A DNA stretch of 63,536 nt, the filler included, from Ministeria vibrans ATCC 50519 (taxonomy: Eukaryota; Protista; Filasterea): NCBI GenBank assembly GCA_943704425.1. It is 5 parts of 5 records of this genome, joined end to end, with 100 filler letters (N's around TTAATTAATTAA, not from the genome) between each part and the next. Parts side by side here need not be neighbours in the genome. Positions count along the whole stretch, not along the records: positions 29,226 to 58,881 come from CALSCP010001954.1; 4 more parts are not named here. One strand, written 5' to 3'. Positions 32,684 through 52,479 of the stretch are shown here, piece after piece (positions within the stretch are counted from its first letter, which is position 1; the number at the start of each line of letters is the position of its first letter). The position numbers and the translations under genes were made by a program. Under the pieces are notes generated by a model, which did not search any database, was not told the origin of the DNA, and saw only the letters and a list, made by a program, of their open reading frames with translations.

Positions 32684-34264
32684 TTAATAAGTAGATAACT
32701 CGATGGCATTAACTGAGTTGTTCCACCGACCCGACTGGCGCACATTGTGAGCGGATGATTTCCAGTCCCATTGGCGGAGGACGGTGCGCCAGTGGGAACC
32801 GTAGTTGGCCTCGACGTGGCGGGTGGGCTGGCAGGGTACTGCGACGGGCACACTAAGCAGCTCAGCCTGACAGACTGTGTTGAAGTGTGGAAAATCATAG
32901 CGAAAGCGTTTGCGGGTGCGCACTTGTGTACCGCCATTCCAGAGAACCTTTCCTCCTTTTTCTCCTTCTTTTGCTGCTGCCGTGTCGTTGTCCATTGGTG
33001 TGGTGGTCGTTGGGTCGGAGTAGAAGAAGAACACGTCTAGTTTGATTCCGGTTGCTATGTGTCGCCAGGAGAGCTCAAGACCCCACTCGACAGTGCCCAG
33101 GCGATGCTCAAAAGTAAAGTCGCCGTTCGTCGCACCGAGTGTGTTTCGGATGGATTCAACGAGTCGCGTTGCAGCACGTACCCAGCGCTTTGTGTTGTTG
33201 ACGTTGTCGTGGTGGTGGCGGTGGTGGAGTGGGGGCATGAGCACGCCAATGTCGACGTCGAGACCGTGCTCAAACACATCGCACTGACGCAACCAGCCAA
33301 GGAGTGTGCCTGAGTTGAGGAACCACTGGACATGTTCTGTTTCAACAAGGGCCCTTAGAGCACGTTGGGTGGAGCGCAACACTTGGCGTGCACCGTCGGC
33401 AAAGCGACGTGACTGCTTCTGACCGTGTTCGAGCCGAAACGCCCGCACCTGAGTTTGGTTGCAAGGGATAAAGCGCGCGTGTGCCGGTAGGGACTCAAGG
33501 CTCCGCGTTTTAAGGGTCACAAGCCGTCGCTCTATTCTGTATGGTGTCAGATAGACCTGGTGGGCATTTAAAGATGGGCTGCTCTCGAGTGCCACGTCCC
33601 GGAGCGGCACTCGTGCCATGGCAGTCTGGAGGTTGCGCACTTCTGTGCCCCCAAGCACAAATGCCCGGTAGTGATGCCCCAACGCACATTCGTGAAGTAC
33701 ACTCACTGCAAGCGACGTGCCGTCAGCGCCACGCAGGTACACTCCCAGAAAGGGCAGACGGTTCAATGCGGCGTAGTCGACGAGCGAGTCGTCTTCACCC
33801 TCCTCAGTACCGTCGTCTACGTGCGCACGGTCTTCAGCATTGACAAGAACAAGCTTGCCAGTCGCCGGAGAGGACTGCTGTGCAAGCGTCGTCAGCCAGT
33901 GCCACTCGTCGGCGACAGTCCACGACGGAGTGCCGAGGATCAGCAGACAAAGGCCAGTCTGACACAGATTGGCGCAATCAGTGCCAAGTTTGTTCGCAAT
34001 GTCTTCCGCTGTCATTCGTCCAAAATGCCGTGCCAGCACCAGGCTCAGGGGGCCTCCGTTGCTGTTGTTCACGCCGATAAATGGCCAAGGGAGTGTGGCG
34101 GTGCACTCGTCGAGGGTCATCGATGAAAGATCGTCTCTCACCGCCGCTGTATTCGACACGCGATCGTCTAGTCGCAGCAAGGCAACGGCCACGGCAAATA
34201 CAATCACCAGCAGGGCCGATGAAGGCATTGCTTGAGTTTTTTTTGTGAACGAGTCGATACTCAT
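32684..34264 (-). CDS. FKTN: Fukutin homologue (LicD-family ribitol-phosphate transferase), intronless, type II membrane anchor
   Basis: WFLNSGTLLGWLRQC, DVDIG (DxD motif), HRLGTVEWGLELSW, IKLDVFFFY, LWNGGTQVRTRKRFRYDFP, VPC...VEANYG..W....QWDWKSSAHNV...GRW closely follow human fukutin. N-terminal hydrophobic anchor ALLVIVFAVAVALL. Confidence 0.88.
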   Translation of the reverse strand: MSIDSFTKKTQAMPSSALLVIVFAVAVALLRLDDRVSNTAAVRDDLSSMTLDECTATLPWPFIGVNNSNGGPLSLVLARHFGRMTAEDIANKLGTDCANLCQTGLCLLILGTPSWTVADEWHWLTTLAQQSSPATGKLVLVNAEDRAHVDDGTEEGEDDSLVDYAALNRLPFLGVYLRGADGTSLAVSVLHECALGHHYRAFVLGGTEVRNLQTAMARVPLRDVALESSPSLNAHQVYLTPYRIERRLVTLKTRSLESLPAHARFIPCNQTQVRAFRLEHGQKQSRRFADGARQVLRSTQRALRALVETEHVQWFLNSGTLLGWLRQCDVFEHGLDVDIGVLMPPLHHRHHHDNVNNTKRWVRAATRLVESIRNTLGATNGDFTFEHRLGTVEWGLELSWRHIATGIKLDVFFFYSDPTTTTPMDNDTAAAKEGEKGGKVLWNGGTQVRTRKRFRYDFPHFNTVCQAELLSVPVAVPCQPTRHVEANYGSHWRTVLRQWDWKSSAHNVRQSGRWNNSVNAIELSTY

Positions 34265-34501
34265 AACTCAATGGGTCAAATGAGAATTGAGAATTGTGAG
34301 ATTTAATTTTTCGAGTCCAAACTCAACGACTCGATGAGTTTTCGTAGGCAGTACTGAGTATACTCCTGTAAATTGTGATGAAAAACATATTAATATAGGA
34401 GCTGAAAGAAGATCAGTAGAGCAAAATTGGAGAAAGTGAAAGGATCAAATGACTCAATCATCAATGAGCAGTTTCAAGTTTGATCAATTTTTTCTACAGG
34501 C

Positions 34502-50300: not shown

Positions 50301-52479
50301 AATGAGGGTGGACTGGACGTAGCAGAGGACAGGATTCTCAGAAAAGATGAGGTTGCCACCAATGGATGTCAGTGAGACAATAGCGTCGAGGTTGAGAAGA
50401 GCCGGGTTGTTGGAGAGCAGGAGGGAGCCCGAGAGGGAGACGAGCGACTCGAAACCCGCAACGTCGGTGAACGCGGCGAGACCTGCGAGTTGAACGTCTC
50501 CTGCGACGGTCTGAAGGGCAGTAAAGCCAGCGAGGTCGGTAGGCAAGGGACAGTCGGAGAGGAGAAAGTTTCCGCCGACACTGATGAGCGACGTGAAGTC
50601 ACCAAACGAAGGGAGTGCGAGGCACTTTTCAATGGTAAATGCACCGGCGGTGGACACGAGCGAGGGCATGCTAATGGCTGTCTGAAGCTCGGGGCACTCG
50701 GAGATGAGGAGCGCACCACCAATGGTTCGAAGGCTCGGCAAGTTGGCAGACGCGAGGAGAGCACAGTTGAGAATGGTCACAGCCTCGCCGACAGTGTTGA
50801 GAGCGCTGAGGCCCTGAAGTGAGAGCAAGGCGGGGCTCTGACGAATGGTGAGTGTACCACTAATACTGAGGAGATTTGCCAGAGGATCCAAAGCGGTGAT
50901 GGTGGACGAGAGGATGGTGAGCGAGCCCTGAATGTTGGTACAGGGAGCGAGGTCGTCGAGTTGTGACTGAGTCATGACAATGTAGGTGCCCAGATCGGGT
51001 ACACACACCGTGGGTGTTGCCGTTGGTGATGCAGGTGCGCCTGTAGCAGTGGGTTCCAGGGTGGCTGTTGCTGTGGGAGCCGCTGTAGCAGATGCAGTAG
51101 GCGAAGCAGTGGGTGAGGCAGTGGGCGACGCTGTGGTTGTGGCGGTCGCCGAGGCATCAGCCGAAGCTTCTGCTGCCTCTGTTGTTTCTATAGCTACAGG
51201 TGCAACAGTGGATTCCTCTACTGCTGCTGCCGCCGCCACAGTACTTGTTGCATCGGCCACGACAGCTGCTACTTGCGACGACGTTGCAGCGGCCTCAGCA
51301 ACGGTCGTTGAGGCGGCAGCCAAGTCCACTGGCGCCGAAGTGAGAGCAGCTGCGGCAGCCAGAGTTGATAAGGGTGCTGAGAGCATAGTGCTAAAAGGAA
51401 AGAGATGAAAAGAGGAAGGGAAGTAAGAAGAGGTGAGTGGACACAAAAATAGCAAGGGATTGATTTTGACTAGAATCGACACGGTTTGTCTGCGATCTCG
51501 CTACGACAACACCCAGTGAAGGGAGCGGGAGGAAGGGAGGAGAGAAGGTGGTAGGAGAGTAGATGCATTCAATGAGATGGCGGGGAGGGCTTGCATGTGC
51601 TTGCAGAGTGTGCGAGTGACATCGAAAGACAAACGGCAAAAAAGAAAAAAGCATGATTGATAACTTTTTTTTAAAAAAAACGCGATGAGCAAAAAAAAAA
51701 AGAAAAGAGAAAAAAAAAGAAAGATGTTACACTGAGACATGTCTGAGTTGAGTGCAAGCGAGTGCGTGGCATGAGGGGGTGGGATGGGACAAGAAGGATG
51801 GAATTGAGCAGAGAGACGGGGCGTTGGGGTTGAGATGGGCTTGAGATTGACGACAATCAGTGTCACAACGGTTCAGCAAAACACACAAGTGAGTCGAAAG
51901 AGGAAAAAAAAAGGGGAAAAAATGAGGGAAGGCAGGATCATCAGACGTGGGGCGTGGGTGGTGGGGATGGTAGAGGAAGCAAGCCATGGATGTGGATAGG
52001 GATCGATGCGAGACAATGGGAGTACTTCGTTTTGGCGCTTTGCGAGATAGTTTTTCTTTTTTTTCGGTCAAGCGGATGCGACGCGCAACGAACGAGAGGG
52101 CTTTGGGGGGAATGTAAAGCACACAATCGCAGTGGAAGGCACAGAGAGAGTCAACCTCGACAAGGACGGGGGCGCATTCGGCGTGAAACCAAACGCATGA
52201 GTACACACGGCCTCTCGTTTTTTTTTTTTTTTTTTTTTTTTTTTTTTTTTTTTTTCTATTCTCTCTTCGCGCGACTAAGTTTGAGCGAAACGGAAGGGGG
52301 ACGCTGCGGTGGGCGGTGGACTAGAAACATGATCAAAAGGCATACGTATCGGCCAGTGACGTAGATTCAATCGCGGGAGCCGGAGCCTGTGGGAAGGACC
52401 AGACGAGGGGCGAAAGAGACGCCAGAAGGAGCAGGACGACGGGCCAGGGCGCGCTCTGTCTGGCATGTAGTCTCGACAT
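38367..52479 (-). CDS. Giant (~4,385 aa) dystroglycan-like type I membrane protein: signal peptide, mucin-like region, receptor-L-domain-like solenoids, central beta-helix-like region, CADG, SEA-like domain, TM, PPxY tail. Exon 1 is 52346-52479 and exon 2 is 38367-51390
   Basis: Exon 1 encodes [33 protein letters not shown] (signal peptide) and joins the 13-kb ORF in frame through a phase-2 GT-AG intron. C-terminus: [11 protein letters not shown]...[13 protein letters not shown]...FVIVATD (CADG), [52 protein letters not shown]. Confidence 0.85.

Follow-up and report, generated by a model that had tools for sequence, protein, structure and literature searches.

A fukutin-type transferase gene and the gene of a giant receptor with a dystroglycan-type stalk, probably neighbors by chance, in an assembly of Ministeria vibrans

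We analyzed a 63,536-nucleotide stretch of DNA (the window, whose positions are used throughout) from Ministeria vibrans ATCC 50519, assembly GCA_943704425.1. The piece studied here, positions 29226-58881, comes from CALSCP010001954.1, and it is gene-dense. An initial annotation had described a fukutin-like gene lying one gene away from the gene of a dystroglycan-like receptor, and had proposed that the two constitute a linked enzyme-substrate system for glycosylation. The piece had been called ungapped from about 29226 to 58881, and we found 0 N within it. The fukutin homologue (32684..34264, - strand) is intronless, as reported: a single exon with an ATG start forms an uninterrupted open reading frame (ORF) of 526 residues, predicted to be a type II membrane protein. 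The giant receptor gene (38367-52479, - strand) has two exons and encodes 4,385 residues. The two genes lie on the same strand, and the distance of about 4.1 kb given for them was measured as 4,102 bp between the fukutin ATG and the stop codon of the receptor, with a single gene in between. This gene was correctly recognized as a DEAD-box helicase (Pfam DEAD domain, 6e-16), but the picture must be corrected in that it lies on the + strand, opposite to both of the other genes.

The intervening DEAD/DEAH-box helicase gene (34493..38223, +) has five exons. RNA-like Logan contigs trace its spliced transcript between position 34493 and a poly(A) site at 38223, with two reported GT..AG joints and two more skips visible in contig pieces; in-frame joining of the five exons by script yielded a protein of about 980 residues. 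A spacer of 228 bp separates the start of the helicase gene from the fukutin ATG, and one of 143 bp separates its end from the receptor stop codon. The receptor start and promoter are about 18 kb away from the fukutin promoter, and the 228-bp spacer upstream of fukutin is common to the helicase, not to the receptor. Given this opposite orientation of the helicase, each of the three genes is transcribed as a unit of its own. No shared transcript or bidirectional promoter for fukutin and the receptor was seen in the RNA-like contigs or in the gene layout. We also observed that the 143 nt from the helicase poly(A) site to the receptor stop codon are occupied by a (TC)56 microsatellite (38224-38368), so that the 3' ends of these two convergent genes must abut or overlap.

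Animal fukutin (FKTN) is a CDP-ribitol:core-M3 ribitol-5-phosphate transferase. The ORF was aligned by phmmer with animal FKTN at E-values of 2.4e-33 to 1e-22, with 30-37% identity over the C-terminal half; the named matches at E 1e-22 or better are FKTN or fukutin, and the remainder are unnamed proteins. Profile comparison with hhalign against an alignment of twelve animal FKTN sequences gave 100% (E 2e-47, 42% identity) over residues 260-516, which delimit a catalytic domain of the LicD/nucleotidyltransferase fold (32717..33487, -). FKTN is closer than FKRP, for which a structure match reached only E 0.022. The invariant family motifs SGTxLGxxRxC, DVDIG, KLDxFFFY, WNGGT, NYG and WDWK are all kept, and so are three catalytic Asp residues: D336 and D338 in the DVD metal-binding motif (33251..33259, -), which was aligned to that of FKRP, and D410 in KLD. 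Their counterparts in FKRP, D362/D364/D416, are catalytic and needed for activity, and they are conserved in FKTN (PMC6965139). A hydrophobic stretch noted by inspection of the translation is the predicted N-terminal signal-anchor (residues 16-31; 34172..34219, -). Pfam gave no match for the ORF at E-values up to 10, including the FKTN stem family PF19737 (FKTN_N), so that the homology emerged only with phmmer and profile methods; in the hhalign comparison, residues 1-259 were unaligned with the FKTN stem. These comparisons show that the ORF at 32684-34264 is, as first annotated, a real fukutin-type catalytic enzyme, with a divergent stem and with an activity that we presume from the conserved catalytic domain. 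Two insertions are found in this domain relative to all aligned animal fukutins, one His-rich and located after the DVD motif (33150-33250, -), the other Thr/Asp/Lys-rich and located before WNGGT (~32950-33020, -).

The extent of the receptor gene agrees with that first described. Its main ORF is uninterrupted for 13.1 kb (38367-51482, -), and a signal-peptide exon precedes it. In the model, which was read from genomic sequence alone, exon 1 with the start codon and signal peptide (52346..52479, -) is joined in frame to the 13-kb exon 2, which includes the stop codon (38367..51390, -), across a predicted GT..AG intron of 955 nt that contains a poly(A) run (51391..52345, -). Splice sites and frame were checked by eye and by script. 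All searches used single-exon sequences, and exons of the receptor and helicase genes were joined by script for frame checks only.

The C-terminal part of the receptor, also encoded on the - strand, has the layout of the membrane-proximal part of dystroglycan. A dystroglycan-type Ig-like domain (CADG, IG2-like; 39405..39716) is followed by a SEA-like domain corresponding to that of the dystroglycan 'proteolytic domain' (39102..39404), a short juxtamembrane Thr/Ala/Pro tract of about 20 residues (39036..39095), a transmembrane helix (38931..38987), seen as a hydrophobic run and as a helix in the structural model described below, and a cytoplasmic tail of about 187 residues (38370..38930). Within the SEA-like domain, the Gly-Ser of the motif KAGSVILEW (39249..39254) aligns with the G653-S654 cleavage site of dystroglycan according to the HMMER alignment, motif comparison and the model; dystroglycans have RGSVILAW or TRGSIVVEW. 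A motif scan of the tail found YREPPSF twice, in addition to the 11-residue terminal segment (38370-38402). At the level of motifs, the receptor C-terminus YRPPPAY is comparable to the Y[RQK]xPPxY at the end of dystroglycan tails, as in YRAPPAYVPP.

The last ~450 receptor residues were used as a phmmer query against 1.84 billion representative proteins, which returned 180 matches. The majority of these cover the Ig-like (He_PIG/CADG) domain only, and the one that was checked is a bacterial RHS protein. About 15 matches cover query residues 2-280 (Ig, SEA and transmembrane helix) in one stretch, with E-values of 5.9e-10 to 1e-4, and every such match examined is a dystroglycan, with Pfam DAG1, often with a_DG1_N2, and named as dystroglycan in fishes and a sea anemone. 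Against a profile of 16 dystroglycans, hhalign gave 99.1% (E 6.6e-19) over 266 columns that comprise the Ig domain, the SEA-like domain and the transmembrane helix. An AlphaFold model made from the single sequence had a predicted local distance difference test (pLDDT) score of 43; when it was remade using the dystroglycan alignment, pLDDT was 70 overall and 80-93 in the Ig domain, and the SEA fold was beta-alpha-beta-beta-alpha-beta with the Gly-Ser in a hairpin. The best ten Foldseek matches of this model are all dystroglycan (8yt8_O, E 7.6e-13; 8uf4, the proteolytic domain, TM-score 0.69-0.72). In a wide VIA-align search the top four were dystroglycan chains (Z 15.7, 12.7, 12.2 and 11.6, vs about 9-10 for generic Ig domains), the SEA-like domain matched 8uf4 and 9c3c_A with Z 12.2-12.7 and a root-mean-square deviation of 2.6-2.7 Å, and model residue 160 (Gly) was superposed on dystroglycan residue 653. 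Given that the model leans on the dystroglycan alignment, these fold matches depend in part on the sequence comparison. In an alignment-free protein-language-model search, dystroglycan clusters led at 0.93, followed by dystroglycan/sarcoglycan-type clusters.

We considered the possibility that this resemblance reflects generic domain sharing, in which a CADG/He_PIG Ig domain, a SEA domain and a Pro-rich tail were brought together by shuffling with no kinship to dystroglycan. He_PIG is a widespread domain, present in several copies in most of the 180 matches. Pfam DAG1 (PF05454) scored 9.8 bits (E 0.62), under its gathering cut-off of 23.3, and He_PIG itself gave no match; the Cys pair of the beta-dystroglycan ectodomain, invariant in the aligned dystroglycans, is absent from the receptor, whose SEA-like region is without Cys; and hhalign left the tail unaligned past the transmembrane helix. 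The partial dependence of the fold matches also fits with such an origin. Shuffling does not readily account for the fact that all examined matches spanning the three elements are dystroglycans, for the profile match over 266 columns, for the position of the Gly-Ser motif at the exact structural site of G653-S654, for a C-terminus nearly the same as that of a bona fide dystroglycan, or for the lead of dystroglycan in the alignment-free search. We regard generic sharing as quite improbable, and the evidence shows that the receptor's C-terminal module is homologous to the membrane-proximal core of dystroglycan. To judge from the sequence comparisons, both homologies, of the enzyme and of this module, are far beyond chance.

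The name 'dystroglycan-like' is therefore appropriate for the Ig/SEA-like region with its Gly-Ser motif, for the transmembrane helix and for the YRxPPxY end, but it does not extend to the alpha-dystroglycan N-terminal domain or the long mucin region. The N-terminal IG1 and S6-like domains (PF18424) had no match in the whole protein or in seven pieces of it. A composition scan likewise showed that the long central mucin region is absent, and that the receptor has only two short tracts, both located where the initial annotation had placed them: the N-terminal one, mucin-like and rich in Thr/Pro/Ala/Ser (51009..51140, -; ~60 residues, at least 55% S+T+P), and the juxtamembrane one at 39036-39095. 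Most of the ectodomain consists of about 3,750 residues of repeats of the Receptor-L/leucine-rich repeat (LRR) type, with a 24-residue period and Cys-rich caps (39717..50981, -; Pfam Recep_L_domain 1.9e-62, also LRR_EndoS). Within this array, a core of about 950 residues (~46.0-48.0 kb, -) has a 21-residue period, is rich in S/A/G/V/N and is without a Pfam match; it may be a distinct type of beta-solenoid repeat. A search with the whole receptor found no orthologue or paralogue, and the closest whole-length relatives are 24-28% identical, several of them with domains typical of bacterial surface proteins. One same-length orthologue candidate (P0034) was rejected because it is a bacterial RHS/He_PIG protein.

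The three genes are flanked by an ankyrin-repeat gene on one side (29821-32535, +; Pfam) and by NPRL2-like and USP-type (ZnF-UBP) genes, read by eye, on the other (52977-58881, +). The 3' end of the ankyrin gene is a 21-nt tandem repeat of 5.3 copies (32412-32523), and a poly(A) end on the + strand at 32712 falls among the final codons of the fukutin ORF, which is convergent and has its stop at 32684; therefore, the 3' ends of these two genes overlap. The NPRL2-like and USP-type genes have small exons and microsatellite-rich introns, with (TTC)53 and (TCATTC)28, and a 35-nt tandem repeat lies at the end of the piece; in exon structure they are unlike the fukutin gene, with its single exon, and the receptor gene, with two. 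The G+C content is about 58% in coding parts vs about 40-45% in spacers. An Rfam scan of the piece gave 0 matches.

If the source were an unrecognized or highly derived animal, or if the genes had been transferred from one, the module would be a divergent relative of animal dystroglycan rather than a pre-metazoan protein. The best fukutin matches are indeed animal proteins, and so are all full-length relatives of the dystroglycan-like module. The compact gene architecture, with a 13-kb single coding exon, spacers of 143-228 bp, introns of about 120-190 nt and a coding G+C of 58%, argues instead for a microbial eukaryote as the source. Furthermore, identity to proteins in the collections does not exceed 41% for any of the three proteins of the window that were searched, the fukutin stem is not recognized by the animal FKTN_N model, and the ectodomain repeats are most like bacterial and protist Receptor-L/LRR arrays. 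An animal origin thus seems very improbable.

We also compared the locus with 43 other fukutin loci (L002-L044), of which 42 came from a metagenome scan and one from a Logan contig. None of the 43, which lie on short contigs of uncertain relationship, contains a dystroglycan-like or Receptor-L ORF. In five compact loci the neighbors of fukutin are FKRP and an ABC transporter (the Logan contig), Ndc1, RIC1/Nup, a CH-domain protein, or unnamed. This negative synteny result is weak evidence, because the contigs are short and their relation to the source is uncertain. The Logan contig (L002; SRR23287151, an unrelated compact eukaryote) has an intronless fukutin homologue (2291-3787, +) head to head with an FKRP homologue (2-1543, -; Pfam FKRP_N 2.9e-21, LicD 1.7e-13), 747 nt apart; this FKRP matched the fukutin ORFs at E 1e-4 to 1e-8. 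In animals, FKTN and FKRP add two successive ribitol-phosphates, and therefore the pair in this contig may be a genuine pathway gene pair. Two of the metagenome contigs (L039 and L040) carry a nucleocytoplasmic large DNA virus (NCLDV) major capsid protein, a D5-type primase and ribonucleotide reductase together with a LicD/fukutin-like ORF of 23% identity, which we assign to a giant-virus LicD-type gene.

Do the enzyme and the receptor form a functional unit? In the linked system originally proposed, the receptor tracts would be O-mannosylated, the neighboring fukutin would add ribitol- or glycerol-phosphate to them, and selection would keep the two genes close. Both homologies are real, the genes share a strand with one gene between them, the receptor carries mucin-like tracts, and an FKTN-FKRP cluster exists in another compact eukaryote contig; moreover, the literature holds that in unicellular relatives of animals the glycosylating enzymes must act on targets other than dystroglycan (PMC4582122, PMC8478517). 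Against this, the two genes share neither promoter nor transcript, and an unrelated gene of opposite orientation lies between them. What the receptor shares with dystroglycan corresponds to beta-dystroglycan and the juxtamembrane region, not to the mucin region that is glycosylated in animals or to the N-terminal domain that they need, and the receptor tracts are short (~60 and ~20 residues). They also lack the basic upstream context of the POMGNT2 site rule. The other fukutin loci, including the five compact ones, are without a dystroglycan-like neighbor. In two small RNA-like data sets, with contig-level data for 32400-38250 only, fukutin was nearly uncovered and the helicase well covered. 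Finally, animal fukutin recognizes the core-M3 glycan rather than the protein, and this glycan first needs POMT1/2, POMGNT2, B3GALNT2 and POMK (PMC8478517).

Taken together, these results did not sustain the proposal of a linked enzyme-substrate system, and the ancestral glycocalyx module that was proposed with it is hypothetical. We consider a functional linkage of the two genes, and with it the maintenance of their proximity by selection, unlikely, because the case was picked post hoc from a very large scan. Our preferred reading, with a probability of roughly 0.6, is that they are two independently transcribed neighbors, one for a fukutin-type enzyme and the other for a receptor with a dystroglycan-type stalk, and that their 4.1-kb proximity is coincidental. 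Coincidence in a gene-dense genome is the most likely explanation of this proximity, and the receptor is one of many surface proteins that the fukutin pathway might plausibly modify. Several points nevertheless weigh against coincidence. In animals, the homologues of these two genes encode an enzyme and its known substrate. By our estimate, a specified pair would lie within two gene positions by chance in about 0.03% of cases if the genome has 10,000 genes or more, and any of about 13 pathway enzymes would lie within two genes of the receptor in about 0.4%; the latter estimate assumes about 12,000 genes and a single such receptor, and the adjacency is a single event. In addition, the head-to-head FKTN and FKRP genes of the Logan contig indicate that clustering of pathway genes occurs in protists, Thr/Pro-rich tracts are indeed present in the receptor, and the synteny test used contigs that are short and of uncertain phylogenetic position.

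From the homologies we infer the enzyme activity, receptor cleavage and adaptor binding as follows. The fukutin homologue would be a type II Golgi-type membrane enzyme that uses a CDP-activated donor to attach a polyol-phosphate (ribitol- or glycerol-phosphate) to an O-linked glycan on secreted or surface proteins. The receptor would be a giant type I surface protein in which the ~3,750-residue Receptor-L/LRR solenoid array serves as the sensing or adhesive part, carried by the dystroglycan-type stalk of Ig-like and SEA-like domains. During maturation this stalk would cleave itself at the Gly-Ser site, so that the ectodomain stays non-covalently on a beta-dystroglycan-like stub, and the terminal YRPPPAY of the stub may recruit WW-domain adaptors to the cytoskeleton.

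It has previously been reported that Monosiga, Salpingoeca and Capsaspora have no dystroglycan or dystroglycan-like protein and no relative of its cytoplasmic domain (Adams and Brancaccio 2015, PMC4582122), and a 2021 review lists dystroglycan among the animal-onset genes (PMC8061703). According to Bigotti and Brancaccio (2021, PMC8478517), the modifying enzymes are all older than dystroglycan, which 'hijacked' them, and before animals they 'must have different targets' (PMC4582122, PMC8478517). Therefore, if a unicellular relative of animals has a fukutin homologue, this is nothing new in kind. Our full-text literature search found no report of a non-animal dystroglycan-like protein, and the module of Ig-like domain, SEA-like domain with the Gly-Ser motif, transmembrane helix and YRxPPxY on an LRR giant appears to be new. 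The gene adjacency by itself adds little; the notable part is this module, since the literature treats dystroglycan as an animal invention. If the source is non-animal, then the membrane-proximal half of dystroglycan, cleavage motif and adaptor-binding end included, predates the animal protein and is here combined with another kind of ectodomain, and the receptor would be a concrete candidate for a pre-animal substrate of the glycosylation pathway. It has to be considered distinctly unlikely that a pre- or extra-animal dystroglycan-type receptor, combining a self-cleaving Ig-SEA stalk, a beta-dystroglycan-like stub and a YRxPPxY adaptor site, was the ancestral target of fukutin/FKRP/LARGE-type phospho-glycans, with the linkage preserved in this gene pair.

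Among known systems, the enzyme resembles FKTN in its type II signal anchor and in a C-terminal LicD/nucleotidyltransferase-fold domain with the DVD motif, the third Asp and the family motifs. It differs in that its N-terminal ~260 residues are not recognizably an FKTN stem, and in the two insertions in its catalytic domain, one of them His-rich. For the receptor, MUC1-type SEA proteins are comparable in their self-cleavage of a G-S(V)VV type, which yields a non-covalent heterodimer, and fungal CADG/transmembrane proteins such as Axl2, which is O-mannosylated, were found by the language-model search to share a dystroglycan-type cadherin-like domain and a transmembrane helix. Neither of these groups has the combination of Ig2, SEA, transmembrane helix and YRxPPxY that is found in the receptor and in dystroglycan. 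Alpha/epsilon-sarcoglycan has the same layout of Ig-like domain, SEA-like domain and transmembrane helix, and formed the next cluster group after dystroglycan in the language-model search; sarcoglycans are without the terminal YRxPPxY, and none was recognized among the best 150 phmmer matches, a subset of which was checked by Pfam. Compared with dystroglycan (DAG1) itself, the receptor is without IG1, the S6-like domain and the long central mucin region, having the ~3,750 residues of Receptor-L/LRR repeats in place of the N-terminal domains; it also lacks the beta-dystroglycan Cys pair, the rest of its tail cannot be aligned, and its Pfam DAG1 score is below the threshold. What the two proteins have in common is the Ig-like and SEA-like fold with a GS(V/I)xxxW motif at the position of G653-S654, a short Thr/Pro stretch followed by a single transmembrane helix, and a tail in which YRxPPxY stands within a few residues of the C-terminus.

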